Source of the DNA: Paraphysomonas bandaiensis
Lineage: Eukaryota > Protista > Chrysophyceae
Assembly (NCBI GenBank): GCA_965644295.1
Contig: CBFFRP010000035.1
Location: forward strand, 124,001-188,000
Direction: 5' to 3'
Length of the DNA stretch: 64,000 nucleotides
Part shown: positions 5,788-56,379 of the stretch, in pieces
Numbering within the stretch: position 1 is the stretch's first letter
Layout of the letters: each line of letters begins with the position of its first letter
The notes under the pieces: model-generated
What the model was told of the DNA's origin: nothing
Databases searched by the model: none
The model's input: the letters and a program-made list of their open reading frames with translations, nothing else
Made by a program: the position numbers and the translations under genes

Positions 5788-6762
5788 TTAGGTTTCGTAA
5801 GCTGCATTTACAAACATCACATTAGCTCTCCTTTTACCGATTCCCAAGGGAAAAGTTTTGGAAATTAATCCACCTGTATCCCTTGTACTCGCGTTAGTAC
5901 TAACAGAATAAGCTGTACGAAAACATTGACCGAAAGCAGTGTCTGGAGCATATAAAGGATGCTTTAACACTGTTGACATGGGTATCCATTTGCAAGCCGC
6001 AACTTCACCCTCCTGAGGCACAATGGGTTGAGTTTCATCTACGGGTCTCAAAATAGAAACACAATACAAGTCAGATGCACTTTCACGAGCTGGACTATTT
6101 CCTTTGTGCCCTTCCACCATAGCTACGAGACTCTGAAATGTGCAGTCGATACCAGTCTCTTCCTTCACTTCACGAACTACACCAGCACTTATATCTTCTC
6201 CTAATGAACAATATCCCCCAGGTAGTTTCCATAAATCAATTCCCGCAGCGGGTCCAGTTTGCTCTTGTATGACAAGTAAGTCTAGATTAGAGTTCAATAC
6301 GAAACCAGCGGCAGCAATATAATGTGATGCCGCAGCGGGAAGCCGCGACTGCTCTTTGCCTCCGGGTAGCCAAGTGCACATTAGGAGATAGTTAGAACTG
6401 GAATGATGAAACCAGAATCCATTATCTACTGCAGCGGGAATAAGTTCTGACGATTCAATTGGGATTCGAAGCCATACACCACGTCGTTTCATTTCTCTCC
6501 AACTCTGTATTGAATGAGCCAAACGAGATCTAAAATCGGAAACTAACATTCCACTGAGATTCTCAGTGATAATAATTCCATTGTAAGCATCAGTCTTCGC
6601 TTCCAATTGATGACAGTGGCTGTGACAGTCACGTGTCAGTGTCAGTGGTGTGCATGGATAAGACTGTCCTGCACGAACATACAGTCCACAGCATGACGAC
6701 TTGCGTCGATATATTCGAAAACACAAAGTACTTGAATGCCTTAGCAAAGACCGTAGATGCAT
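5788..6762 (-). CDS. Nudix hydrolase, NUDT6/AtNUDT8-like, intronless, possible mitochondrial presequence
   Basis: Nudix box WKLPGGYCSLGEDISAGVVREVKEETGI; N-terminal subdomain RGVWLRIP...GFWFHH...WLP; Arg/Ser-rich N-terminus. Confidence 0.92.
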   Translation of the reverse strand: MHLRSLLRHSSTLCFRIYRRKSSCCGLYVRAGQSYPCTPLTLTRDCHSHCHQLEAKTDAYNGIIITENLSGMLVSDFRSRLAHSIQSWREMKRRGVWLRIPIESSELIPAAVDNGFWFHHSSSNYLLMCTWLPGGKEQSRLPAAASHYIAAAGFVLNSNLDLLVIQEQTGPAAGIDLWKLPGGYCSLGEDISAGVVREVKEETGIDCTFQSLVAMVEGHKGNSPARESASDLYCVSILRPVDETQPIVPQEGEVAACKWIPMSTVLKHPLYAPDTAFGQCFRTAYSVSTNASTRDTGGLISKTFPLGIGKRRANVMFVNAAYET

Positions 6763-7017
6763 AGACACGCACTGTTGTTGTTGATAGAAACCAGATCAGT
6801 TCTTGGATACACGAGATGCACTGCAAGATCCACCTGCCTGGTCTCACTGTCTCTATGACTGCGACCGTCACTCTCCCTGACAGACAACTGTACACTGCGG
6901 TATACGTAGCTGTACTCTGTACCTGTCTATTCCTTCTGCTGTACGCCTGTACGCGTACTGCTGTATACGGTGAGCATATTGTACCGGCAGTATCTCCATA
7001 TATCACAGTCTATACAG

Positions 7018-19507: not shown

Positions 19508-20665
19508 ATGAGTTGTTCGTACTCTGCGACTGTCGCTGTGCTTAGCAATGATGATTTGCTGTCAATAATAGTTAGCTATTTACTTGGTGAAGAAAATCAG
19601 AACGATGTGGCATTTCCGATGTTTATTCTATGCTCAACCTTCAGAAGTATGTATGAGCTCGTATTTAATTGCAAAAGTATGAGGGGAATATATACTTACC
19701 CTTTCATATCTTATGGGTCCCACTTTCTTCAGTCTCTATCTCTTATAAAGTGGGCTAAACGTGAAGGGTGTAATGTACTCTCCGCAAAGCAGTTTGCAAC
19801 TGCAGCAGCTCAAAGCCCCTTAGATGTATTGGAGTGGCTAAACAACCAAGGCTGCCCTCGTGATGAAAGAGCTTTCGCGGCTGCAGCTACAGCTGGTCGA
19901 TTAGATATTATGGTGTGGCTTCACAACTTGCTTCCGCCATGTCCTTGGAATCATCATACTACCGCAGGTGCAGCTAGTACAGGACAATTGCGAATTCTTC
20001 AGTGGCTGCGAGCACAAGATCCACCGTGTCCCTGGCTGAGCGATACATGTCACATGGCCGCCCTTAACAACCACTTGGACATTCTTCAATGGGCCAGGGA
20101 GAATGGCTGCCCATGGGCCTCAGGAACATTCTCTAATGCAGCCTTTGGAGGTCATTTGGATGTATTAGAGTGGGCTGTAAACTGTGAAGACAAACCAATC
20201 GGTTGGAATCGACGAATATGTGAAGCTGCTTCAAGAGGAAATCATTTATCGCTCCTCAAATGGGCACGTATTCAATACTATGCTCCATGGAATGAGAAGG
20301 TATGCGCCAATGCCGCCAGGAACGGGAACTTAGAAATGCTTCAGTGGGTCCGATCGCAGCCTATGCGGTGTCCGTGGGACAAAGAGACGTGTGTAGCTGC
20401 TGCATTTGAAGGACATCTTCACATATTAGAGTGGGTTCGTGCTACTCAACATGACGAGGATCAGTGTCCGTGGGACGCAAACGTTTGTGCTGCCGCCACC
20501 GCCGCTGGACATCTTCATGTTCTTCAATGGCTACGTGCTCAAACCCCTCCATGCCCCTGGGATTATAATACCTACACGAGTGCACAAAGTAAGAAGAACG
20601 CAGCGATTTTGACATGGCTAGAGGCACAGTATCCCCCTTGTCCAACAACGAGATTCACCTATTGA
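19508..20665 (+). CDS. F-box-like + ankyrin-repeat protein (giant-virus/algal 'CPW' ankyrin type), intronless
   Basis: Repeats of the form AAxxGHLxxLxW...PCPW; the N-terminus LSNDDLLSIIVSYL resembles the first F-box helix. Confidence 0.88.
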   Translation: MSCSYSATVAVLSNDDLLSIIVSYLLGEENQNDVAFPMFILCSTFRSMYELVFNCKSMRGIYTYPFISYGSHFLQSLSLIKWAKREGCNVLSAKQFATAAAQSPLDVLEWLNNQGCPRDERAFAAAATAGRLDIMVWLHNLLPPCPWNHHTTAGAASTGQLRILQWLRAQDPPCPWLSDTCHMAALNNHLDILQWARENGCPWASGTFSNAAFGGHLDVLEWAVNCEDKPIGWNRRICEAASRGNHLSLLKWARIQYYAPWNEKVCANAARNGNLEMLQWVRSQPMRCPWDKETCVAAAFEGHLHILEWVRATQHDEDQCPWDANVCAAATAAGHLHVLQWLRAQTPPCPWDYNTYTSAQSKKNAAILTWLEAQYPPCPTTRFTY

Positions 20666-28800: not shown

Positions 28801-31800
28801 ATGGCAACTGAAGGAAGTGAAGCTGTAGCCACTAGTGTAGATGATGAGGTGAATAAAATTAGCTCATAAAATAAAGTTGATTTTATAGCGTATAGGAACA
28901 AGTGTGTGACATTTGTTTGGATGGCACTGTATATGAAGACAACGAGATCTTGATATGCGAAAAGTGCAACGTCGCCGTGCACCAGTCTTGCTATAGCGTC
29001 GATGTCATTCCTGATGATGAATGGTTAGATGATATGGGTGTTATATTACTTGTATAAGAGTGTGTTGTATTAAGGTTTTGTGAGGTCTGTAGAGCCGGTG
29101 AGGATCCGAAAGAAACTCAATGCGAGATATGTCTCCACAAAACTGGCGCGTTCAAGCGTACTGAACAGAACGACAAGTGGGCACACTGCTTATGTGCACT
29201 CTGGGTGCCGGAGGTGTACTGCGATATTTCGAAGGGTGGTGTCTATAATACTTCTATGATCGACAAAGCGCGGTACAAAATCAGCTGCAAGCTATGTTCT
29301 AATAAGGGTGCTATTATCCAATGCTGCCACGGACGGTGTTGTGTGGGGGCGCACCCGTGGTGCGCAATACGTCACAAGAATGGATTCACTCATCGAGTGG
29401 TAAAGGATCCTCAGAACCCAAATGATCTTGTGTGGGAAGTCTTCTGTGCTCAACACGCTTCGTCCGTTTATGCTCCAGTTAAACCGAAGGTAAGGCCTGG
29501 CGGCAAATGAAAGTCTCAGTATTTTATTTCGTGGCTGCGGGCCGCAAGTGGCGCACACTTGAGTAGCCGCGCAATGTGTTTCTACCATGGTTGACTACTG
29601 GTAGTATGTGATATCAGTTTTGTTTTTTGCTTCAATGGCGATGTCGTTTCAATGTTAAAAAGTATTGTTATTGTAGACTGAGGCTCAGTATTGAAAAAAT
29701 TGAAAGTTGGTGACGTTTGCTTATACAGGTTAAAGCCAAACGATCCTCAATGCCTGGAAATGCTGCCAGTACACCATCAGATATATGTGACAGTGTTTCA
29801 AGGTCGAAGAAAGGGGGCAAAACTTCTAAGAACCGTTGTAAAAGCAATCCTTCGAAACGACGAGGCAGACCCCCCAAAGCGCCTAAATTAGCTATACGAG
29901 ATTTTAGTGACGACGAAGCTGATATGGAATTTTCAGATGATGAGTGGGCCACGAATTCGCAAAGTTCTACAAGGAAGCGAAGGAAAAGTTCGAAACGAGG
30001 AAGTGGAGTGCGAAGGCGCATAGGACGAGCAAGCGCATTTCCAGGCGATAGCAGTGATGACGAAGCTGCTGAAGATGAAGAAGACGGCGATGTAAGTCAA
30101 TGGACAGAACTGTAGTATTCAGCATGTGCTGTGTTTAACGATAGTCATATTGTAATGGATGCATGGTAACACGGTAATGTGTACATCTAGGTGGAGACGA
30201 ACGGCGGTCTTGAGGGGTATGCTGTCTGCACTGTGTCCGAGTGGCCAGGAAAAGCCGAGTCAGAACCTATGGATCTTCCCCACTTTTGGGATGTGGCAGC
30301 CATGAGTTTTCCAGAAGATCATGACAATGAGGTGTGTGGTAAACTTATATCTGCCATACCACACCGTGCTGCAGAACAATGAACTGCGTGCCTGCGACGA
30401 TCGTGTAGATTTCTATGTAACAATCTGTATTGGTCCTGGTTTAATTTATTTTACAGTGGGTGGAGTTCATGGCGTCCAGACTTCTTTTGAACCCAGCCAA
30501 CCCCTTTTACGATGACTATGCCACCTACAAACCTCCGCCTCTTGGGTGTCTGAAGGACACTATCGAGGTACGAGTAATTGATGTGGTACTCGTTCGTGTG
30601 ATAGCATGTCATCACAGAAATTAATTCGTGGGGATAGTGACGTTTTGTCATCTATACTATCTGACCGCGATTTTGTCGCCCTGATGGATCCTGACAAGCG
30701 CAATGAATTTGAAAGCAAAATACGTAAGCTCATCAAAGATATCAACAAAATCCCTACTGTTCGACAGGAGCAGAAACGTACATTCGAAGACAGTACATAT
30801 GTGGATGCGATACGCAGTTCTTCTCCAGTGGACCCATATCCAGGCGATGGTATCAGTCATACTGCTGAGGTCAAAGAAAAAGAGGGACCGCTGACACCAG
30901 GAAGGAGGCGCACTAGCTCACTAGTCGACGACGGGCAGTGCTTTGACATAGGTGCAATCGCTTACCTGACACAGCTGGAGTTTCCTTTTGACGGATTCGA
31001 CGAGTCAGGTTTGTTCGAAATAATTTGACTAGAGTAAATTGGCGATGTGATGTGATACTATATTTATTATATTGCACCTCTCTAATTTATATCCGATACA
31101 GATGAAAGCAAACCGTCGAATATCCGGGTTGTATTTAATGGTCCAGAACGCAAGAGCTGTATATTCTCTATTCGACAACGTAATAGTATTCTATCGAGCG
31201 CAAGTAGTAGTTCTACTTCTGATGAAGCACAGTGGCGAAGAGCTGTTTACGGTCTTGATCGTTGTAGTGAAGCGGATACTAGAACTGAAGCTGACGGGAA
31301 TCAGTGTGAAAGTAAAGGGTACAATCTTGGACCAAGAGCCATTCGAAGGCTGTTTACGTCGTATGGTGTGGTGGGTCCTCACACTGCAGTGAATGAGGGA
31401 TGCGTCAGTGATGAAACTCTTGCAAGCACTGAAATAAAACTTGATAGTGTACAACCTTACAGCTCATCTAACGAGGTGATTTTGGGAGATAGAGAACTGA
31501 TTCCATTGAGCGAGGAAAATGATGAAATTTGTGACCTAATTCGCCACGACCTGGCGGTGTTTAGAGATCTTACGAAGTCAATGACTGAAACTGTAGAACG
31601 ATTACTGCAGTCGGATGCAATGACTGCTGCTCGACAAGCTATCACTCGAAGGAAACAACAGGAAATAGAAAACGAGACCATTCTGGCGGCTTATGCTAAT
31701 CAGCGAGTATGGGCCAGTGTGTGTCGAGGGTTAATGAGAGGAGTCAGAGATCAGACGAAAGACTTTAATAAACAGCAACTGGATGTTCTTCCTGCATCGT

Positions 31801-34800
31801 GGACGATAAAAGTGGAAGGCCGACCAACAGAAGAACAATTAGAAGTCTCCAAAGAAGATATTAGTCACATGGACACCGTATGTATGTGTTGCTTTGATGG
31901 CACCAGTTCTGATGAGACGAATAAAATTATATTTTGTGACGGATGTAATGCAGCCATGCATCAGATGTGCTATGGTATTCCTGTTGTTCCGGAGGGAGAT
32001 TTCTTTTGTGATCGTTGTCAACATATCATCTACATCTCTCAGGAACCGGACTTTTATTATGACAATGAAGATCTCAAGGACGTGGTGAAATGTTGTTTAT
32101 GTCCGTTATACCATGGCGCCCTGAAGCGCACAACAGACGGTCGGTGGGTGCACTTGTCCTGCGCCATTTGGTCTGGGGGAGCAGATATATGCGATCTTCA
32201 AAGCATGAGCCCAATAGATATCAGTCGTGTGCCTATTTCTGTTCCATCCTCCCCACAAACGCTCAGTGAACGTCCCTTAGGAGGTGATCGAACTGCCAGC
32301 ACTCCGTTACACACACACCCCTTATCCGACACCAGTGTATCATCACAAACGCCATCGTCATGCCCGACGAGTGGACCCGCTGATGTCGCAACTAGTTCAA
32401 ACCCAAGTATTGCTCTCAATGTAGATTCGACCATACCACCCGAACTGGGGATGAATGCTGTTGGTGATGCATGTATTGCCCGTGGTCCGGAACCTCCTTC
32501 CCAGGAATCGAATGTCTCTGGTGGCACTACAAATCCTGTAGCGTCCCTGCCTGTTATTCCGGAGGCTTTGTCTCATGGGTGCACTATATGCGGTAAGCGC
32601 AGCGGCTTTATGACTGGATGTGTCAGTGAAGACTGTGGCAAACGGTTTCACCCGATCTGTGCCTGGTTTGCAGGGCTGTACATTGCAACGGAAATAAACG
32701 ACCCGACTTTTCTCGGTCAATCAAAAGCTGGAAGTATGTACAAATACCCATCTGGTGTAGCCTTCACGTTTCACTGTCCGTCCCACACTCCCGCTATTGC
32801 CTCTCGCCCTCGGGATGTGCAGAGGGATCTGCGACGAGTATATATGATAAATGAACTGGACTTGTGTTGCATTCCTGGTCGCGCTCCGAAGCGCAGGAGA
32901 CAGAAAAAGAAAAGCCTGAATGCTACAAGCGGTACGAAGCGACTAGCTGGAGGAACGAAGCCCAAAGATTTGAAACCAGATCGGTATGATTCGGAAATAT
33001 GTGCAATATGTTTGGGACCATCTCGAAAGATATTTTCACACTCACCTGCTCAGCGTGTAGGACGCCGAATGAAAGGCCGAGATGAAGCTCTCGGCAAACA
33101 AGATGCACACGCATGGGTGGTACACTGCATCGACTGTGGTCTGACCGTTCATAGGAGATGTCTAGTTCCAGATGCTCCCGCTCCGACATGTGTGATAACA
33201 ATGCCGAATGTGTTAAATTCGTTGAGCATTTCCGATAATCCGCAAACATCTTTGTCTAAACCACCTAGAAATTTACGTACTGGGCAGTCACCATTGCTTA
33301 CTGACGTACATGATGACCCAGTTAATCCAGATGTGCAACATGTTTCACAGCAGCAGACAAGTTCAAGCCGTCCGAGTATTAAAGAAAGTCCTGTATTAGA
33401 TTTATTGACTGGGTATGGAGATAGTGCCGATACTGGGGGTGAGGGTAGCTTTATTGAATCGAAGGATTCTAAGCACATGGATGACAGTAGCCCTGTACCA
33501 TCTGGAACTTGTACTCCGAGCATACAGAAAGATACTTCCATGAGAAATGGATGCGATAAAAGTGTTACGTCTGATGTACAAGGCAGCGAGAATGTCACTA
33601 GTAAGTTCATTTCCAGTGTCACGACGAATTCAGAAATTGACTATAGCTCGTGGAAGTGTGCGCAATGTGTTCACAAAGCTGCTACAACTGGCCAGGTTTC
33701 TGATGAAGGTGAGCCAATATCTGCACCAGAGCTGCGCTGTGTCGCTTGCCCTCGTCGCGGGGGTATGTTTGTGCAGCATGATGGAAAGTGGTTTCATAAT
33801 TTCTGCGCTGCCCACAAACCTATTCGAAGCGGTGACAAGAATCAACATGCCAAGGACGGGAAAAAACAGAACTGTTCGTACTGTAATCGCAAAACTGGCC
33901 TTTCTGTAAGGTGCTCTCATCCTGAACCATGCGGGCAGCATTTCCACCCCATATGTGCCGCTCGTGCAGGGGACTCTTTCATGCGAATCAGGAACGGAGT
34001 AGTTGAGCAGTTCTGCTCTAGTCACACTCCTGTTGGCGTGTGTCGTCTTCCCAATGGATATTGGGTGGACACAGAAGAGGTTGCACGTCTGAGACGTTCT
34101 CTCGATAACGCTTTGATTATACTGGACCTTGTGCGAAAGCGCGAAAAATCGAAAAAACAGTATTACAAGACGCGAGGGGAGGTTTTTGCTCGTTGTATAG
34201 AAGATGCACTCCGCCAACTGAAAAGCTCTCGTGGACTTCTGACAGAGCAAGAATTAGCACATTCTGATGTTGAGGCTGTAACTGTGGATGACGTACTAAC
34301 AGATATATATAGTGATAATGAACAAAATACGACGGATAGTCCGGCAGGGTTTAGGAGAGATTATGGGCGTCATCAAAAACCACTTTCTACTTCACATATA
34401 TCGGAAGGTGGCGACGAGCTAGTGCCACACCCCTCTAAACGCAAGCGCCCAGAAAACTATTCTGGGAAAGAAGGCCTCAAGCTTTACAAAGACGACTTTG
34501 AAGAAGACAACTTTGAACCCGAAATTATACCTGCCAAGAAGCGACGTGGGTCGGCCGATATATCTATGAACGAAGCTCCAATAGCAAATAGTTCTAAGCA
34601 TCATGTTACTGATACTGTCCCGATGACTGTGCGTGTCGAATTGAGTGGCCAAGAGCGTAGCTACGCTCACTGCTACAAGCAAGGGGGATATGGAGAGTAT
34701 TCAAGAAAGTTTCGGGAGGACATGCTGAAAACTGTTGATGAGACTCGTGAATCCATAGGTATTTTTGGCAGCCAGCGCGGATTTGTGGACTTTGAAAGAA

Positions 34801-36672
34801 AAATAGGTGCACATGTAGACAAGTATTTGGGGATGACTATAGGAGAAATATCATCCGCGTTGGAACCAGAAACTGATTCAAAAAGTCGAGAAGAACCAAT
34901 ATGCGAGACAGTGACTAGTGGTGGGAGGAGAAGGAGTTCTATCGACGAATTGACGACAGAATGCCAGCAGGAAGTGAAGCCAGAATCTGTGGAGAAAAAA
35001 AGAAAGCGATCACCAAATGAAGATACTTTATCGGTGAAAGTAAGTATGGGGCAAACCACAGAGGAGGGATCTTCAAGGCGTAAGAGTAAGGTCAATAAGC
35101 CTCCCGTGCCCGAATTAGCTGTCAATGTTCCTTTATTGCCTCATGTTGACTTCACACTTGTGGATAACATTGAACGAAAGTTTGCGAACACTAAATCCGA
35201 CTTTGAGAAAGAAGTGCGTAGTCTAGTACCGCAGTTATTGCCTTCCCAAAGCGAATCCGTAGACTGGGCCATTGTAAGTACTACTCCCGATGACGGATCC
35301 TCACAGAATTTAATACGACTCGAACGGATGCTGTCGACTATTCTTGCCATCCTTTCTAATGTATCTATTCCCTGCACTGGCGTGTATGGAAACATCAGCA
35401 AGCCAGGCTCATCCGATGATTGTATTGACGCTCTGATAGCTCGGCTGTCCGCTAATGAGAGCATATCGGATCGGTGGTGGGAAGTTCTAGAGTCGTCCAC
35501 GCAGCCGAGAAGTGTCCCTGTTAAGCGCACAAGAAGGCAATCTGCAAGAAAATCGAAATCGTTAAGTGGATATGGTACATCAAGTACTGAAGGCGAGGGC
35601 ACCTCTATTCCTAGGTCTGAAATAGAGGAGAAAGACAGTGGTGGAGTAGTAGAGGAAGATGAGAGAAAGTTATCTGAAGATTTTAATGAAATTCCCTATG
35701 ATGCCCTCCCAGATTACGATACACTGGTGATACATCCTATATGCTTGGATACTATGAAGAGCAAATTACAATCGCATTCTTATCGTTCGTTTTCTCAATT
35801 TGCTAAAGATTTTTATGAAATGCTCAGCAATGGTCGACAGATTACGGTTGATGGGTCAAAGGTGATTACTCGCATTGTAATTTTTGCATATTGTAGCCAA
35901 TATTATTTATTGCAACATGGTGAACCTGTGGCGATACGCACTATGTTATTTGCATTTAAACTTATTTTTACAGACATGGTGGGACACTCAGGTGCTAAGT
36001 GGTCTTTTTGCATACCTCCGCCAGTTGGGGTTGGAATCTACACCCGGAAATTGTCTGCTAAGACCTCACACTGATGGTGGAATATCGTATGCTAAGTGTA
36101 TCGGCGAAAGCTCCACCAATGCCGCAACTGTTCGAGGGTGTACTTTGTGCGAACAAAAGGTGATTTCTGTTATATACATATTTCACGACCATGTATACGT
36201 ACCCATGATGTCATTGTCTTTAAAGTTGTGTGTGTCATATGAATACATAGTTATAGTTTTCGACATACCTGGCAACCTCACGCGTTAATGTTCAATGATA
36301 TAGTGGAATGTTTCCGGAAATTTCTGTCGAACCGCCGTTTCTACTACAACTCCACGATCTAGTGGTCGCACAGCGTCGAAGTCTTCAAGTGGTTTGTGGA
36401 AGTGGGTGTGTACTGAGTGTATCAACACTATTCATACACATATATTGGGTATGGCGGTTAAGATATACTGGCCTGATGATGCCAAGTACTATGATGGGTG
36501 GATAGAAGCCTACGATGAGGTGTCTACTGAGCATCGGGTAAATTATTCTGATGGGGAATGGGAGTTTTTGCAGCTTCAAAGGGAAGATATTCTGTTTCGC
36601 ATGGACGGTGATGATTATTTGAAGTTATTTAAAGTTATAAGCGTGAGTCAGAAGTCTAAAGGGAAGAAATAA
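28801..36672 (+). CDS. Large PHD/ePHD (PZP) chromatin protein, BRPF/JADE-like, with a bromodomain-like region and a C-terminal Tudor-like domain; multi-exon
   Basis: CMCCFDGTSSDETNKIIFCDGCNAAMHQMCYG followed by CCLCP..GALKRTTDGRWVHLSCA; similar modules near 28880-29460 and 33000-34030; PDYDTLVIHPICLDTMKSKL..Y; VKIYWPDDAKYYDGWI. Confidence 0.85.
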
Positions 36673-41184: not shown

Positions 41185-41653
41185 CTTTATGTCTGGTTGA
41201 TGTTATATGAGTTGAATGCACATCGACATGCTCCTAACATACATGTATATATACATACATACACATATATATGCATGTATACTCACGTGTATGTGACAAG
41301 TTAAGTTCATGTACGGTACACTGGTATGTATACTGTACAGTAGATATGGTGCAGTACACTGCGGTAGATGTGTACGAATATTCTTCTGTCAAAATCAGCT
41401 GCCGTTCCTCAGAACGTATTCCGGTATTCTACATGGTGTAGTGTAGGTACTCGTGTGTCAAAACTGACCACATAACGAGAGAGGTCACCATAGAAAACCC
41501 AGTTTTTGTGGAAAAGTGTGGTGGAAACCGACATACAGTACGTAAATGTGTCGTATGTGTATGTGTATCATCGCTATAGTATGATCCACTACCTCAGCTT
41601 GCAGTGTATTAACAGACTCGTCAGCCTCATGTAACCTCTATCAGAGTTCAGAT

Positions 41654-43372
41654 ATGTTGCATATATCTGTTCTTAACGATGATGTGATTCGTCTCATCAT
41701 CTCTATGATCCCACACACAGCTCTCCTTCCTGTGATCATGACTTGTAAGAGATTTCACGATATCGCTGACACCATGAGAGATAAGAGGAGAGTACAGTCA
41801 CATGTATCTCACTATTGTATGACGAACTCAATGGTCTCATGGGCTCTGTTGATGGGCTGTCGAGAGAGCCTGATAATGAATGGATGTGCACTATATGGCA
41901 AACTAGAGCAGATGAAACACATCATAAGACATAATACACATACGCAGGACACTATGCGCATATGGGGTAAGGAGTGTACTTGCCATGCTGCATATAATGC
42001 TGCAAGAAGTGGACACCTAGATAAACTGCAGTGGCTTAGTTCACAAGACCCTCCATGTCCAAGGGATGAATGGACTTGCAGTGGTGCTGCTAGAGGTGGA
42101 CACTTGGATATTCTGAAGTGGCTTCGTTCGCAGGATCCTCCATGGCCATGGGATACACGGACTTGCATCGAAGCTGCAAGAGGTGGACACTTGGCTGTTC
42201 TGAAATGGCTTCGTTCTCAGGATCCTCCATGTCCATGGGATAGACAGACTTGCATTGGTGCCGCTAGAGGTGGACATTTGGATGTTTTGAAGTGGCTTCG
42301 ATCACAGGACCCTCCATGTCCATGGGATAGACAGACTTGCATTGGTGCCGCTAAAGGTGGACACTTGGATGTTTTGAAGTGGCTTCGTTCACAGGACCCT
42401 CCATGTCCATGGGATGGAATTACTTGCAGTGGTGCTGCTAGAGGTGGACACTTGGATATTCTGAAGTGGCTTCGTTCACAGGATCCTCCATGTCCATGGG
42501 ATGGAATTACTTGCATGGATGCTTCTGGTGGTGGACATTTGGATGTTTTGAAGTGGCTTCGTTCGCAGGATCCTCCATGTCCATGGGATAAATGGACTTG
42601 CATGGATGCTTCTGGTGGTGGACATTTGTATGTTTTGAAGTGGCTTCGTTCACAGGATCCTCCATGTCCATGGAACGAAGAGACTTGCAGTGGTGCTGCT
42701 AGAGGTGGATACTTGGATATACTGCAGTGGCTTCGATCACAGGATCCTCCATGCCCGTGGGACAGACAGACTTGCATTGGTGCTGCTAGTGGTGGACATT
42801 TGGCTGTTCTGCGGTGGCTTCGTTCGCAGGATCCTCCATGTCCATGGGACAGACAGACTTGCATTGGTGCTGCTAGTGGTGGGCATTTGGCTGTTCTGAA
42901 GTGGCTTCGTTCGCAGGATCCTCCATGTCCATGGGATGAACAATCTTGCATCGAGGCCGCTAGAGGTGGACATTTGGCTGTTCTGAAGTGGCTTCGCTCA
43001 CAGGACCCTCCATGCCCATGGGATAGAAGGACTTGCAGTGGTGCTGCTAGTGGTGGACACTTGGATATACTGCAGTGGCTTCGATCACAGGACCCTCCAT
43101 GTCCATGGGATAGTATTACTTGCAGTGTTGCTACTAGAGGTGGACATTTGGATGTTTTGAAGTGGCTTCGTTCACAAGATCCTCCACTGCCATGGGACAG
43201 ACAGACTTGCATTGGTGCTGCTAGTGGTGGGCATTTGGATGTTCTAAAGTGGCTTCGATCACAGGATCCTCCATGTCCATGGGATAGATGGAATTGTGCT
43301 GCTGCTGCTGCTAGGGGTGGGCACTTGTATGTTTTGAAATGGATTCGTTCACAGGACCCTCCATATACCTAA
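41654..43372 (+). CDS. F-box-like + 15 x 29-aa ankyrin-repeat protein, intronless
   Basis: N-terminus LNDDVIRLIISMI...VIMTCKRFHDIA; 87-bp tandem units encoding QDPPCPWDxxTCxxAAxGGHLxxLKWLRS. Confidence 0.92.
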   Translation: MLHISVLNDDVIRLIISMIPHTALLPVIMTCKRFHDIADTMRDKRRVQSHVSHYCMTNSMVSWALLMGCRESLIMNGCALYGKLEQMKHIIRHNTHTQDTMRIWGKECTCHAAYNAARSGHLDKLQWLSSQDPPCPRDEWTCSGAARGGHLDILKWLRSQDPPWPWDTRTCIEAARGGHLAVLKWLRSQDPPCPWDRQTCIGAARGGHLDVLKWLRSQDPPCPWDRQTCIGAAKGGHLDVLKWLRSQDPPCPWDGITCSGAARGGHLDILKWLRSQDPPCPWDGITCMDASGGGHLDVLKWLRSQDPPCPWDKWTCMDASGGGHLYVLKWLRSQDPPCPWNEETCSGAARGGYLDILQWLRSQDPPCPWDRQTCIGAASGGHLAVLRWLRSQDPPCPWDRQTCIGAASGGHLAVLKWLRSQDPPCPWDEQSCIEAARGGHLAVLKWLRSQDPPCPWDRRTCSGAASGGHLDILQWLRSQDPPCPWDSITCSVATRGGHLDVLKWLRSQDPPLPWDRQTCIGAASGGHLDVLKWLRSQDPPCPWDRWNCAAAAARGGHLYVLKWIRSQDPPYT

Positions 43373-43520
43373 GACGAATGCACATTATTGCTGCTGCTAG
43401 TGGTGGTCATTTGCATGTATTGAAGTGGCTTCGTTCACAGGGCCCTCCATGCCCCTGGGGTAAATGAGCCTGTGTACTGCTGCTAGGGATAGGCACTCGT
43501 ATGTTCTGAAGTTGCTATTC
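43373..43520 (+). pseudogene. Decayed ankyrin repeat units beyond the stop codon
   Basis: gctgctagtggtggtcatttgcatgtattgaagtggcttcgttcacagggccctccatgcccctgg continues the repeat after TAA, with frameshifts and stops. Confidence 0.8.
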
Positions 43521-44008
43521 ACTTTTTCCCATTTCGTTACTATGCTCGTGGGAGAAAAGTGAAGTGACTGGATACGTTATTATTATTGCACACACAACTG
43601 TGTCATTTCGCGAAATAAAGATCACCGCCAACATAATTTTAGCATTGTGGTAACAACCATTGATACGCTTTCGTACAACCATTGATACGCTTTCGTATCT
43701 GGAATATTAGAATATGGATCTTATTCTAGTATATTCAGTATGTCACTTCAAGACAATGTACGAGAATACAGTGAAATATAGTGATGTACAAATGCTGTGA
43801 TGATATTGAGAAACTGAAATAGTTTGATCGTTCAAGATATGTTCAGTAACGAGAGGTTCGCATATGTAGGATATTATGCAGGGATTATAATGAGTTAGTG
43901 TTGGTTATCACAACTTCGTGTAAACGATACTAATAAATCTATCTAGTCTTACGACAAATTCTCTCTGTGATCTAGTGTAAAATGAGCGTTTCTCAGCATG
44001 GAATAGTC

Positions 44009-44200: not shown

Positions 44201-45319
44201 TATTTAACGAAATATTTATAGGCAGATTATGGACTATGGAACAGATCATATAAGTACAACAGACCTAAAAAATAATTCCAATTATTTGATACTAAACAAT
44301 GCACTCAAGTATTTCATAGTCCAGAATAAAGTATACTTGGACTTATATTTTGCATCATTGTGGCTATCATAATAGTGATTGCAATATATTGTGAGCCACT
44401 TTAACAGAACCAATATTGATGGAAATTTTGGCCCCACCACCAATCAATGTATTGCTTCCTAGCCCTGAAGTATAGTATAATTGACATATATTCACGATTC
44501 ATAATTGTATAACGTATAATAATCACAATTAATAGAGTGGTGCTTATATACATATACACACTCACACTAAGGTTAATACAATGAAAGTATTTCACAACAT
44601 GTCACCACATTACTGGAACAAGACAATGAGTGCCATGAACAATAGAAAACCTTCAACTGAAACTGGTCAGATCTGCACTTTGTTCAAAAGGGTTGGAGAT
44701 TTCGGACAAGATTTCCATTGAATGGTCAGTATGATTTATGGTTTTAATGAAATGAGATCACATCATCTCATAAGCAGTAATTTGACACGCAAAAGAGTGC
44801 CTCTATTGCTTATACTCGAGCTAGCACAGTGATGTCTTCGTCGATACTATAGTGAGAGATAATGGCTTCATACTCATGGATGCTGCAACCTCAATTATGT
44901 CCCTCCGTGAGTTAGAGGTGAAATACTTTCTAGTGCGCTGGATATACGATACCGTAACTGATCTGTGTAGTAAAGCGTGTACAGTTTAGAGAGAGAATGA
45001 ATCGTATATCTCTAACAGTACTACGAATATACAGCTATATATGTGAGATGCAGACGTGTATACACACACATGGCCTGACTGACTGTGTTAGTGAAGCCCT
45101 CACTCGTGTCTGTGAGTAGAGGCAGCAACAGTGTCTCTGAATGGTGTGCTCCTATTCACATATGCATGCAATGAGCACATGCTTCAAAGCGACACTGGCA
45201 TATAGACGTCTATCATACGCACACAGCAGTACGTACACAGATATACGACAGAGAAATACGTCGGTAACATACAGATATGGTGTTTGTACTGCTGTATGTG
45301 TACGGTGTATGTATGTACA

Positions 45320-45776
45320 GTGTATGTGTACGGGTGTGTGCATGTACACAGCAGTGTGTGTGAGTGTATGTGTACGGGTGTGTGCATGTACAGCAGTGTG
45401 TGTGAGTGTATGTGTACGGGTGTGTGCATGTACAGCAGTGTGTGTGAGTGTATGTGTACGGGTGTGTGCATGTACAGCAGTGTGTGTGAGTGTATGTGTA
45501 CGGGTGTGTGCATGTACAGCAGTGTGTGTGAGTGTATGTGTACGGGTGTGTGCATGTACAGCAGTGTGTGTGAGTGTATGTGTACGGGTGTGTGCATGTA
45601 CAGCAGTGTGTGTGAGTGTATGTGTACGGGTGTGTGCATGTACAGCAGTGTGTGTGAGTGTATGTGTACGGGTGTGTGCATGTACAGCAGTGTGTGTGAG
45701 TGTATGTGTACGGGTGTGTGCATGTACAGCAGTGTGTGTGAGTGTATGTGTACGGGTGTGTGCATGTACAGCAGTG
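45320..45776. repeat. 42-bp minisatellite, ~11 near-perfect copies
   Basis: Unit gtgtatgtgtacgggtgtgtgcatgtacagcagtgtgtgtga. Confidence 0.97.
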
Positions 45777-50579: not shown

Positions 50580-51846
50580 ATGGAAAAGTCGGATCAACAC
50601 ATGTGAGAAACCTACATAAATAAATAATAATTACTTATCATTGTCATCGTTATGTAGCTCACAGGAAGGAGACGATGACGCTCTTTCTTCTTTATTATTG
50701 TTACTCAAACAAAATAGCAGCACTGTTTGTGAAGGAGAGGTACGAATACACATACACTTTGATTGTTGTCATTTTATTTTTCAGGTTGGTTACCAAAATA
50801 CTTATAGATCGCCGAGAAAATCTTCCGTACTTCAAGAAGATAAAGTCCATCAACAAGACAATGAAAATTCTTCTTTGTCTACAAGTCTCACCATTGCTGA
50901 TCTGAGAGGCTATTTTCACCTTCCTATCGTTGAGGTAGCTAAACAGCTTGGCACGTGCACAACAGCACTTAAGAAAATATGCCGTAAACACAAAATAAAG
51001 AAGTGGCCCTATAGACAGATTCGCAGTCTCACAAAGAGTATACAATCTCTTGAAATGGCTGCTTTAAATGACACAATGGGGGATGATCTTCGTGAGCAGT
51101 ATCGTGAGCAAGTAATGACCCTACAACAGGCGATTGACGACATTGTACAGGACCCAAACACCAACATCTCTGAGCTAGCCAAAAAACTTGAATCCGAATG
51201 GGGTGAAGGTGAAATCGATATTGGAAGACGTCAACCAGCCGAACCGTCTGAAAATGTTCGTCATATTATCCAAGCAGCAGCGGCAACTGTTGGCGTAGAG
51301 GGTAGCGGGCGCACGAGCGGTGCGAAGCGAAAGCTCTCCCACACAGATGATGATGGTCCGGAAGGACAAGGATCTAATGGGTCCCAAATGAAGGACAACC
51401 TTGGTGTCTCGGATACAGCGATGGGAACCGGGAAGACTTCCCTCCCTGCCCCAACTCCTCAGAAGATTCCTGAAGCGGTCACTGTCGGTATAACCCAAGT
51501 AAGCCAGGTTGCGTTGTCAACGGACTCCAAAAGTAGTTCAGTTCACTTTATTGGTCCCGTCAGTCTTGCCCCGTTGGAACGCCGCCGTATCAATAAGCTC
51601 GCTTCAAAGAAACTCGTCCCGCTTATTGAACCTGATATCTGTAATCATTTCAAAATGGAATTTTTACCTCAGGGCCCTCTTCTGCAAGTCCGTTTCTGTC
51701 ACGAAGGTCTCTCTGTGTTAGAGGGTGGAGAAGACATTACCATGCCGCAGGGAGGAAATGAGAGCCATTCAGATAACTTGGGAGGGTCTAACATTACCGA
51801 TTCTTCGGAAGGTGTGGGCAGTCAACAGCCTGTTGCCACACACTAG
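50580..51846 (+). CDS. RWP-RK domain transcription factor, 3 exons
   Basis: LTIADLRGYFHLPIVEVAKQLGTCTTALKKICRKHKIKKWPYRQ. Two short 5' introns and the start codon are inferred. Confidence 0.9.
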
Positions 51847-54180: not shown

Positions 54181-56379
54181 ATGTTCGGTATGGATGAGTC
54201 CCTTCGTTGGGAGGGATTTTCGAGTGAATCTGATAGCGATATGTCTGATTTTGATGTTGATGCTATTGATAGAGAACTACGTGAGAGTGAACACGAAGAA
54301 GACCATGAGAAACCAGAAGTCAGTAGCTATGACTCTGAGGGAGACCCACCAGTTAAACCTATTGAGATATATGAGATCGAAAATAGACGACAGTATTTTG
54401 ATAATTATGGCACTGAGATCGAGCCAGTGTCTCGAACCCCAGTTATGGAATTAGTAGAATTTGACACAGATGCAGATCAAGCACTGCGCGAGTGGAGAAG
54501 ACGGGGTAGCTCGATTGATGAGCAGAGCAGTGTGGGAAGTAAAGACGCAAGAAGGAAAACACCTAGTCAGCGATTTGCAACACGCTCAGCTGAAGATTCA
54601 TTTTCGAGGGCCCGCTCTCTCCCAGAATCCGACATCAATAGAACAGTTGAAAACTCTGATGAGCCAGCAGATGCTAAGCGCAAGAAAAAGACGTCACGAC
54701 ATCCGAATTTCTCTCATTCAGTTTCGGTGCCTGTGCCTGCCGCGTCTGCTGTAACGCGTGTTGACACTGCTGGTAGCGATACTTCAATACGTAGTAGATC
54801 GAGCGCAAATAGAAGTCGTAGCAAGAAATCGAAAGTTGGCGTTGAACCCACAGCGGAGATTTTTCAAGGCGGTGTGGTATCTGCATTAGAGTATCTAGGA
54901 ATGGAAGACACAAGAGCTTCGAAACACGAATTAAAGGCGTTTCCGCCTGCCAATAATCAAGTTGCTCCCATATTTGACAATGGTAATCATATGGCCAAGA
55001 TATCAGCGGCTCGTACTGCAAGTGTAATCTCCAGTGATGATGCTGTCTTCAATCATAACTTGCTGCCTCAGGGTTCTAAGTCCTCTAGCGACGCCACCAC
55101 TATAATTCGGCGTCCATCTGCTCCCCCTCCAATGTTGAGCTCAGGATCACAGCCGTGGAAGCCGTTGTCATTCCGAACAAAACCTTTGTTGGCAAAATAT
55201 ACGGAAGTGCATTCCTTTGCTAATGCCGTTCAGGTTGTCACTGGTGAAGGTGCGGAAACAGGAATGGTACTATGCGCTACTGCTGACAGCACCGTGCGCC
55301 TAGTTGATGTGACCAGTGGCAAGGTGGCCGCAATGTATGAAGGACATTCGGACCGTGTGCTAGCTGTTTGCGTCAGTGAAGCTTCAACAACTACAGACTC
55401 TGGTGTACAGCCATCTCGTATTGTTGCAGCAGGATCGAGGGATGAAACCGTATGTATATGGGACTATAAAACGCGCAGACTCATTCATGTCCTCTCCAAG
55501 CATGAAGGAGCGGTGTGGGCGGTTGCTGTTTACACGCGCCTTCCCCAACCGTTAGTAGTTTCCGGTTCTAGCGACTGTACCATACGATCATGGAATGTGC
55601 ATACAGGTACAGAGGTGAGCATATTCCGCGGACATACGGACACTGTTTTGTGCCTTGCGATCCACTTCGGATCAGGAGATCAATCTAAGGATCCTCCACG
55701 ACTAGTTTCAGGCGGAGCTGATAATTTAATCAGACTGTGGGACATTCACACTGGCAGGCATTGTCGTATGTTAGATGGTCACTCAGACGATGTTAATGCT
55801 GTGTCCGTCGTTGCTGATAGCAGTGGCAGCTGTATTCGAGACCCCAAAATTGTTAGCGGCGGAAGAGATAGAACAGTACGGGTGTGGGATATCCTAAGGG
55901 GTGCCCAGCTAGCCGTATTCAATGGACATACTGACTGCATCTATGGTGTAGTAGGGTTAATTGGAAACTTTTCCGTAGGAATAGGGGCCCATGTGGAAGT
56001 CTCTTCGGAAAGAAAACCTAGTGTCAGCCAACTAAATAGACAGTCGTCGGTGTGGTCGAAAACACTCAATGACATTGACGACGAATTCATTTCAAAGAAA
56101 GGGACTAAATCTTTTGTAATAGTATCCTGTGGGGAAGATAGAACGGTGCGTCTATGGAATGTTCTCGAGGAAAAACAAGTAGCGATATTGAAACAGCATC
56201 GGGGTAGCGTAAAAGGTGTTTCTGTTGCTCCTGTTAAAATTCCTACTAGTGACACGAATACGCCGCCGGTTTCAATGATGCTAATGGCGACATGTAGTTG
56301 GGATAAGAGTGTGATATTTTATGACTTTGCTAGTGTCTTAAAGAAAACCTCATCAAACTCTTGTTGTATTCTGTCGTAA
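54181..56379 (+). CDS. WD40-repeat protein with a disordered N-terminal half and a C-terminal CaaX-like motif, intronless
   Basis: About 7 GH...WD repeats; ends SCCILS. Confidence 0.9.
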   Translation: MFGMDESLRWEGFSSESDSDMSDFDVDAIDRELRESEHEEDHEKPEVSSYDSEGDPPVKPIEIYEIENRRQYFDNYGTEIEPVSRTPVMELVEFDTDADQALREWRRRGSSIDEQSSVGSKDARRKTPSQRFATRSAEDSFSRARSLPESDINRTVENSDEPADAKRKKKTSRHPNFSHSVSVPVPAASAVTRVDTAGSDTSIRSRSSANRSRSKKSKVGVEPTAEIFQGGVVSALEYLGMEDTRASKHELKAFPPANNQVAPIFDNGNHMAKISAARTASVISSDDAVFNHNLLPQGSKSSSDATTIIRRPSAPPPMLSSGSQPWKPLSFRTKPLLAKYTEVHSFANAVQVVTGEGAETGMVLCATADSTVRLVDVTSGKVAAMYEGHSDRVLAVCVSEASTTTDSGVQPSRIVAAGSRDETVCIWDYKTRRLIHVLSKHEGAVWAVAVYTRLPQPLVVSGSSDCTIRSWNVHTGTEVSIFRGHTDTVLCLAIHFGSGDQSKDPPRLVSGGADNLIRLWDIHTGRHCRMLDGHSDDVNAVSVVADSSGSCIRDPKIVSGGRDRTVRVWDILRGAQLAVFNGHTDCIYGVVGLIGNFSVGIGAHVEVSSERKPSVSQLNRQSSVWSKTLNDIDDEFISKKGTKSFVIVSCGEDRTVRLWNVLEEKQVAILKQHRGSVKGVSVAPVKIPTSDTNTPPVSMMLMATCSWDKSVIFYDFASVLKKTSSNSCCILS

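Follow-up and report, generated by a model that had tools for sequence, protein, structure and literature searches.

Ankyrin arrays serve as the target-binding modules of F-box adaptors that enter host Skp1–cullin–F-box (SCF) ubiquitin ligases in Legionella AnkB and in poxvirus and Orientia (PRANC) proteins (PMC2790608, PMC9414399, PMC4148323). Giant viruses are described as having large ankyrin and F-box families that arose by tandem duplication (PMC5995976, PMC5871332), and the ankyrin repeat families of Chloropicon have been noted as large and species-specific (PMC12301720). Here we describe a gene at 41654–43372 on the forward strand of a 64,000-nucleotide stretch of DNA from the marine protist Paraphysomonas bandaiensis (positions 124,001 to 188,000 of contig CBFFRP010000035.1; hereafter the window), which places a long array of 29-residue repeats behind an F-box-like N-terminus. 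We put at roughly 60% the probability that the gene is functional and belongs to a large family of F-box type, expanded in its lineage, in which a solenoid of 29-residue ankyrin repeats would be the target-binding domain.

The Repeat Array and Its Variable Sites

The coding sequence is complete and consists of a single exon of 572 codons plus a stop, as seen in the list of open reading frames (ORFs) and in the translation. The AlphaFold model of the product has a mean predicted local distance difference test score (pLDDT) of 88.4 for the whole protein and values >95 throughout the array. Tandem Repeats Finder detects one array, which spans 41998–43465, with a period of 87, 16.9 copies, 83% matches, and a score of 1669. 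Position 42044 is codon 131 in phase 0, and when the translation of the ORF is cut in that register, 15 tandem units are obtained that span 42044–43351. The 15 in-register 87-bp units of the initial annotation are reproduced in this way, and the residues that it gave for positions 9–10, 13–14, and 17 agree exactly with ours. The array is slightly larger than had been stated, in that a divergent, cap-like first ankyrin-like unit lies upstream of the 15 regular ones (41957–42043, residues 102–130, delimited by the register cut, with helices at 97–119 and 122–130 in the model), which brings the whole protein array to 16 repeats. Repeat finding, the register cut, per-site entropy, and the model all support the regular units, 14 of which have 29 residues; the last (43262–43351) has 30, with one additional Ala codon, and so measures 90 bp. 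As the model predicts, each unit begins with a Pro-rich eight-residue loop, QDPPCPWD (positions 1–8), which is followed by helix 1 (9–17), a GGH turn (18–20), and helix 2 (21–29). Read in the same register, the translation ends with a partial unit, QDPPYT, and the stop codon (43352–43372). A 331-codon antisense ORF also runs through the array (42217–43212, minus strand); it is not evidence of a gene, because the repeat unit has no stop in one antisense frame.

Pfam ankyrin models match the whole protein at 118.6 bits for Ank_4 (E 7.5e-35, cut-off 22.7), 83.9 bits for Ank_2 (E 1.2e-23, cut-off 27.3), and 74.4 bits for Ank (E 3.9e-21, cut-off 21.1). For the AlphaFold model, 62 further sequences were used, drawn from relatives in other organisms and from the window's second gene of the family. 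Foldseek matches to this model include ankyrin-1, ankyrin-B, NOMPC, espin, designed ankyrin repeat proteins (DARPins), and FEM1C, and also pentatricopeptide repeat (PPR) proteins, at full-length TM-scores of 0.2–0.3. When the matches are realigned with VIA-align, the best 50 are all ankyrin proteins (ankyrin-1, Z 23.1; espin, Z 22.9, 4.6 Å over 277 residues), and no PPR protein or transcription activator-like effector (TALE) is among them. With the same program, blocks of five units taken from the model fit DARPins at 2.4–2.9 Å over 132–139 residues. The unit departs from the canonical ankyrin repeat of 33 residues with TPLH and a beta-hairpin: it has 29 residues and carries xxTCxx at the place of TPLH, and DSSP assigns no strands in the array model. 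Judged by these matches and by the predicted fold, the repeat is a true ankyrin repeat shortened by four residues, that is, a short variant within the superfamily. The earlier ankyrin- or DARPin-like description of the array is structurally fair, given the matches to the Pfam ankyrin clan and the superposition of the model on both DARPins and natural arrays.

Variation among the 15 units is concentrated at positions 9, 10, 13, 14, and 17, where the per-site entropy is 2.15, 2.11, 1.69, 1.74, and 1.64 bits, respectively. Lesser values are seen at positions 22, 23, and 25 (1.34, 0.84, and 0.91 bits), and the remaining positions lie at 0–0.9 bits. On helix 1, positions 9, 13, and 17 are spaced i, i+4, and i+8, with 10 and 14 as their neighbors, and the conserved residues T11, C12, A15, and A16 occupy the opposite side. 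All five variable positions are thus predicted to lie on one face of helix 1, which was the check that the initial annotation had proposed; their exposure is read from helix periodicity rather than from computed solvent exposure. Helix 1 is the inner helix of ankyrin proteins and lines the groove, and the variable sites would therefore form one stripe on the usual binding side. When 447 units of 120 relatives from other organisms are compared, entropy is again highest at these five positions (3.7, 3.9, 3.5, 3.4, and 2.7 bits). The pattern, being shared by the whole repeat class in other taxa, is thus a feature of the fold rather than of this locus, as it is for the general ankyrin consensus. 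In a HMMER alignment to DARPin 6mol, position 17 corresponds to randomized position 13 and position 9 to randomized position 5, while positions 10, 13, and 14 align with framework residues. With only two of the five variable sites at randomized positions, the overlap with the designed library is partial.

Between units, the ratio of nonsynonymous to synonymous substitution rates (dN/dS) in the scaffold is 0.08–0.14 at a silent divergence of about 0.4. These values show that the units were not copied recently and that purifying selection on the frame is strong. For the five variable sites, the proportion of nonsynonymous differences (pN) within this gene is 0.43, as compared with a proportion of synonymous differences (pS) of 0.32 in the scaffold. 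The resulting ratio of 1.36 has an interval of 0.77–2.77 when bootstrapped over units and codons, with a probability of 0.145 that it is 1 or less. Only position 10 reaches a ratio of about 2, and the within-codon estimate of 2.2 for the variable sites rests on merely three synonymous sites. The variable sites of this gene fit either neutrality or mild positive selection. The initial annotation had spoken of a rapidly diversifying recognition code; the interval, which spans 1, does not demonstrate this for the present gene, and the same variability is seen across the whole repeat class.

The initial annotation had also described the variable di-residues as reshuffled between units. All four combinations of I or W at position 10 with S or M at position 13 are present among the units, and with as many as three base differences between the codons concerned, exchange between units is real. 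This exchange is not, however, targeted to the variable sites: of 351 pairs formed by informative nucleotide columns, 170 fail the four-gamete test, synonymous scaffold sites among them. Neighboring units 2–3 and 8–9 are near-duplicates, and the combination RQ+IG occurs in 6 of the 15 units. Such a mosaic is what tandem arrays ordinarily acquire through unequal crossing-over and short-tract conversion. Beyond the stop codon, Tandem Repeats Finder, tblastn, and frame translations place two further units, decayed and frame-shifted, in the 3′ untranslated region (43375 to about 43520, plus strand). These read in two different frames, as ...AAASGGHLHVLKWLRSQGPPCPWGK followed by a stop and as ...AARDRHSYVLKLLFT, and tblastn matches to the array are found at 43357–43476. 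The decayed units are remnants of a longer array, once of at least 17–18 units, the 3′ end of which is now untranslated region.

The N-Terminal Domain, Transcription, and Competing Explanations

The F-box-like domain comprises residues 4–45 (41663–41788, plus strand), and three helices are predicted within it at 9–18, 21–30, and 32–43. A disordered linker follows (residues 46–101, 41789–41956), in which family scans give no match; the pLDDT is <50 at residues 44–88. The Pfam F-box model matches residues 4–45 with 17.4 bits in the whole protein and with 20.5 bits (E 4.5e-4) when the N-terminus alone is searched, the cut-off being 20.5. Two profile comparisons with hhalign against the F-box N-termini of repeat relatives give the same register, with E-values of 2.9e-4 and 6.7e-4 and probabilities of only 40% and 27%. 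The N-terminus was also folded alone from an eight-sequence alignment. The top Foldseek match of this model is the Skp2 F-box (1fs2) with a nonsignificant E of 2.7, and the Skp2 F-box 1fs1 aligns at 1.2 Å over 33 columns with 33% identity; SLY1, also an F-box protein, appears in the same list, again with an E-value that is not significant. As the model itself is poor (pLDDT 58), the match to Skp2 is merely a hint.

Comparison with related genes adds to this picture. A motif of LPxE(L/I) type precedes the repeats in 34 of 66 5′-complete ORFs from the retrieved metagenome and viral loci, and 24 of 32 such motif-bearing N-termini match Pfam F-box-like at E ≤ 0.001. Within the window, a second and more diverged family member (19508–20665, plus strand; 385 residues with irregular ankyrin-like units), recognized by tblastn and by comparison of the N-terminal motifs, shares the motif VL(S)NDD..I..S with the product of 41654–43372; its own sequence gives no Pfam F-box match at E ≤ 0.1. 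We consider it quite probable that the N-terminal domain is derived from an F-box, and it may bind Skp1. The earlier designation as F-box-like is plausible, and close relatives carry clear F-boxes; the match of this protein is borderline at 20.5 bits, and the usual LP motif reads LN.

Transcript data are available from environmental libraries and from runs that carry the name of the organism. Logan contigs from X11, a polyA-selected marine metatranscriptome, match gene-specific stretches without mismatches at 42715–42787, 43209–43450, and 43421–43632. The last of these ends 13 nt after AATAAA at 43614–43619 (plus strand), a likely polyadenylation signal. The gene is also present in runs labeled as the organism itself (X14 and X5, probably RNA). 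As the family is multi-copy and the contigs are short unitigs, with joints that have sides of only 21 nt and probably stem from paralogues, and as even the DNA run has holes, transcription is likely but short of proof. In that DNA-labeled run, X1, contig depth is zero at 41300–41623 and 41867–41947 with the rest of the gene covered; the holes cannot be read as absence. The differences that can be assigned to runs from other samples, one of them under another organism label, are four synonymous and one nonsynonymous, the latter (E173D) at variable position 14. This 4:1 synonymous excess fits a constrained, functional gene.

If the gene is indeed a functional member of an F-box-type family, the three-helix motif at its N-terminus would dock on Skp1 of an SCF cullin-RING ubiquitin ligase, and the 16-repeat array would bind a protein target, probably an extended stretch, through the helix-1 stripe formed by positions 9, 10, 13, 14, and 17. 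The bound target might then be ubiquitinated. The array would grow and change by unequal crossing-over and by short-tract gene conversion between the 87-bp units, with selection holding the scaffold constant and leaving the binding stripe free to change.

Several observations weigh against this explanation. The F-box score is borderline, merely equal to the Pfam cut-off, and for the related Pfam F-box-like model the protein falls below the threshold (15.6 versus 24.3 bits). The Pro of the LP motif is replaced by Asn, the sequence being L7-N8 in this protein and L-S-N in that of the second family gene, while Pro is invariant in the 32 related N-termini, a set picked for carrying an LP-type motif. 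The structural evidence comes from an N-terminal model of low confidence and a Skp2 match well outside significance. Residues 1–112 have no relatives in a word-based homologue search, and phmmer finds no match for the N-terminus among PDB sequences. Positive selection at the variable sites does not reach significance, and the evidence for expression, coming from short unitigs of a multi-copy family, is merely suggestive.

Some of these points would suit an ankyrin protein that binds or scaffolds with no connection to SCF ligases, in which the N-terminus is a degenerate or unrelated three-helix segment and Skp1 binding has been lost. An F-box score that sits at the cut-off and drops below it on the full protein, LN in place of LP, hhalign probabilities of 27–40%, and a nonsignificant Skp2 match from a doubtful model are all compatible with such a protein. 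Four independent weak comparisons nevertheless agree on one F-box register, clear F-boxes stand at the corresponding position in relatives that bear this repeat, and the N-terminal motif is conserved between two diverged genes of the window; we therefore regard the loss of the SCF link as unlikely. The gene might also be a decaying or neutrally drifting copy of its family, with little or no function and with variable sites that simply drift, as would be suggested by the continuation of the array past the stop codon in frame-shifted, decayed units and by a pN at the variable sites that is statistically indistinguishable from the silent rate. Against such decay stand an ORF that is open over 572 codons, the low scaffold dN/dS despite the silent divergence accumulated between units, the excess of synonymous differences between samples, and exact matches in polyA RNA libraries. 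Together these make a nonfunctional copy decidedly improbable.

The initial annotation had further raised a TALE-like recognition of a polymer, whereby each repeat would read one unit of a nucleic acid or other chain through its variable di-residues, as TALE or PPR repeats do. The near-identity of the repeats and the small number of recurring residue combinations, RQ+IG above all, have some resemblance to such a code, and Foldseek lists PPR10 and designed PPR proteins at E around 1e-7. The recurring combinations are, however, largely those of the neighboring duplicate units 2–3 and 8–9, the array is near-neutral with an isoelectric point of 7.9, the sequence matches ankyrin models strongly, and the realigned structural matches contain ankyrin proteins exclusively. 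We regard the polymer code as highly improbable. A functional F-box-type protein with an ankyrin solenoid as its target-binding domain is the explanation that we favor.

Genomic Surroundings

The window holds genes for a PHD-bromodomain protein (31368–36074), a WD40 protein (54181–56379), an RWP-RK protein (50641–51846), and a Nudix hydrolase (5788–6768, minus strand), together with an exon that encodes a katanin p80 con80 domain. As the repeat gene lies among these ordinary eukaryotic genes, it is cellular and not viral. No inverted repeats or transposon ends flank it; the sole pair found is a 20-nt match of 80%, probably due to chance.

The exact product of the Nudix gene is present in a 1,073-bp transcript-type record of the Joint Genome Institute (JGI; 3300017004). 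Its nearest named relatives are land-plant proteins of only 36–39% identity, and the lineage is therefore poorly represented in named databases. Downstream of the repeat gene, a 42-bp minisatellite at 45319–45776 (10.9 copies, 99% identity) lies within TG/CA-rich simple repeats and gives rise to long spurious ORFs on both strands.

Relatives and Known Systems

Matches to the array are found in more than 3,400 proteins, and the highest identity among them is 65%. Named relatives include the "ankyrin repeat proteins" of Chloropicon primus and C. roscoffensis, "F-box domain-containing proteins" of Raphidocelis, and proteins of Tribonema, Seminavis, and Balamuthia. Further relatives are encoded by 454 stretches in JGI metagenomes, and across the protein collection, viral contigs, and metagenome contigs the best matches do not exceed 67% identity. 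In giant-virus contigs the repeat recurs with 53–58% identity, where it either follows an F-box (L003) or precedes a C-terminal RING finger (L001 and L002), and the same 29-residue repeat is found in viral genomes of 1.9–2.5 Mb. As these viral relatives couple the repeat to RING or F-box domains, they provide a further link to ubiquitin ligases. The combination of this repeat with an F-box or RING is common: it occurs in green algae, in giant viruses, and in metagenomes from lakes and the sea, and the architecture is already known.

The C-terminal RING of the repeat-bearing proteins is of C3HC4 type and occurs at L001 2794–4428 and L002 2767–4158, as well as in L014, L024, and L057. This conserved RING-bearing protein, which is present in giant-virus and lake-metagenome contigs, constitutes a second way in which the repeat joins ubiquitin ligation.

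An antiviral or conflict role for the gene would be purely speculative. More broadly, and with low probability, the genome-wide family could form an intracellular recognition repertoire that tags giant-virus or parasite proteins for degradation, a host counterpart of the viral F-box and RING proteins with the same repeat, the modules having been exchanged or mimicked. The single locus is one well-preserved, probably expressed addition to a family that stands in public databases by the thousand under the name "ankyrin repeat protein." The wider interest lies in the 29-residue "DPPCPW" ankyrin variant, a distinct and very widespread repeat class that has been joined repeatedly to F-box or RING domains in algae, other protists, and giant viruses. 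In the literature searched, we found no structural or functional characterization of this class; once its structure is solved and a single target identified, thousands of genes would become interpretable.

Among the described adaptors, Legionella AnkB has the domain order seen here, with the F-box at the N-terminus, whereas in the poxvirus and Orientia proteins the F-box is C-terminal. All three differ from the present gene in having few, canonical 33-residue repeats and in being pathogen effectors rather than members of host gene families. DARPins share with the array a constant framework combined with surface variation, but their repeat has 33 residues with TPLH and a beta-hairpin and is present in 4–6 copies; here the repeat has 29 residues, lacks both elements, and is present in 16. 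Long ankyrin solenoids such as the membrane-binding domains of ankyrin-R and ankyrin-B bind extended peptides along the groove of their inner helices, and FEM1C is an ankyrin-based substrate receptor of a cullin-RING ligase. Both ankyrin-R/B and FEM1, which serves as a receptor for cullin-2, are among the structural matches of the model, although their superhelix differs from that predicted here, as the low full-length TM-scores indicate, and FEM1 docks via a different adaptor motif.

The giant-virus families, as found in Pandoraviridae, metagenome-assembled genomes, and Bodo saltans virus, comprise ankyrin, F-box, and RING proteins, and the same repeat type occurs in giant-virus contigs. A close correspondence is seen with the green algae Chloropicon primus, C. 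roscoffensis, and Raphidocelis subcapitata, the proteins of which have the same 29-residue period, the consensus DPPCPWDxxTCxxAAxGGHLxVLKWLRxQ, and the same variable positions, with an N-terminal F-box in several of them and an array identity of up to 65%. Compared with these, the N-terminal domain of the P. bandaiensis protein is far more diverged, with LN for LP and no word-level relatives, and its units are more uniform within the gene (83% identity at the DNA level). The gene does not represent a new system but clearly exemplifies a type that is already common in algae and giant viruses.

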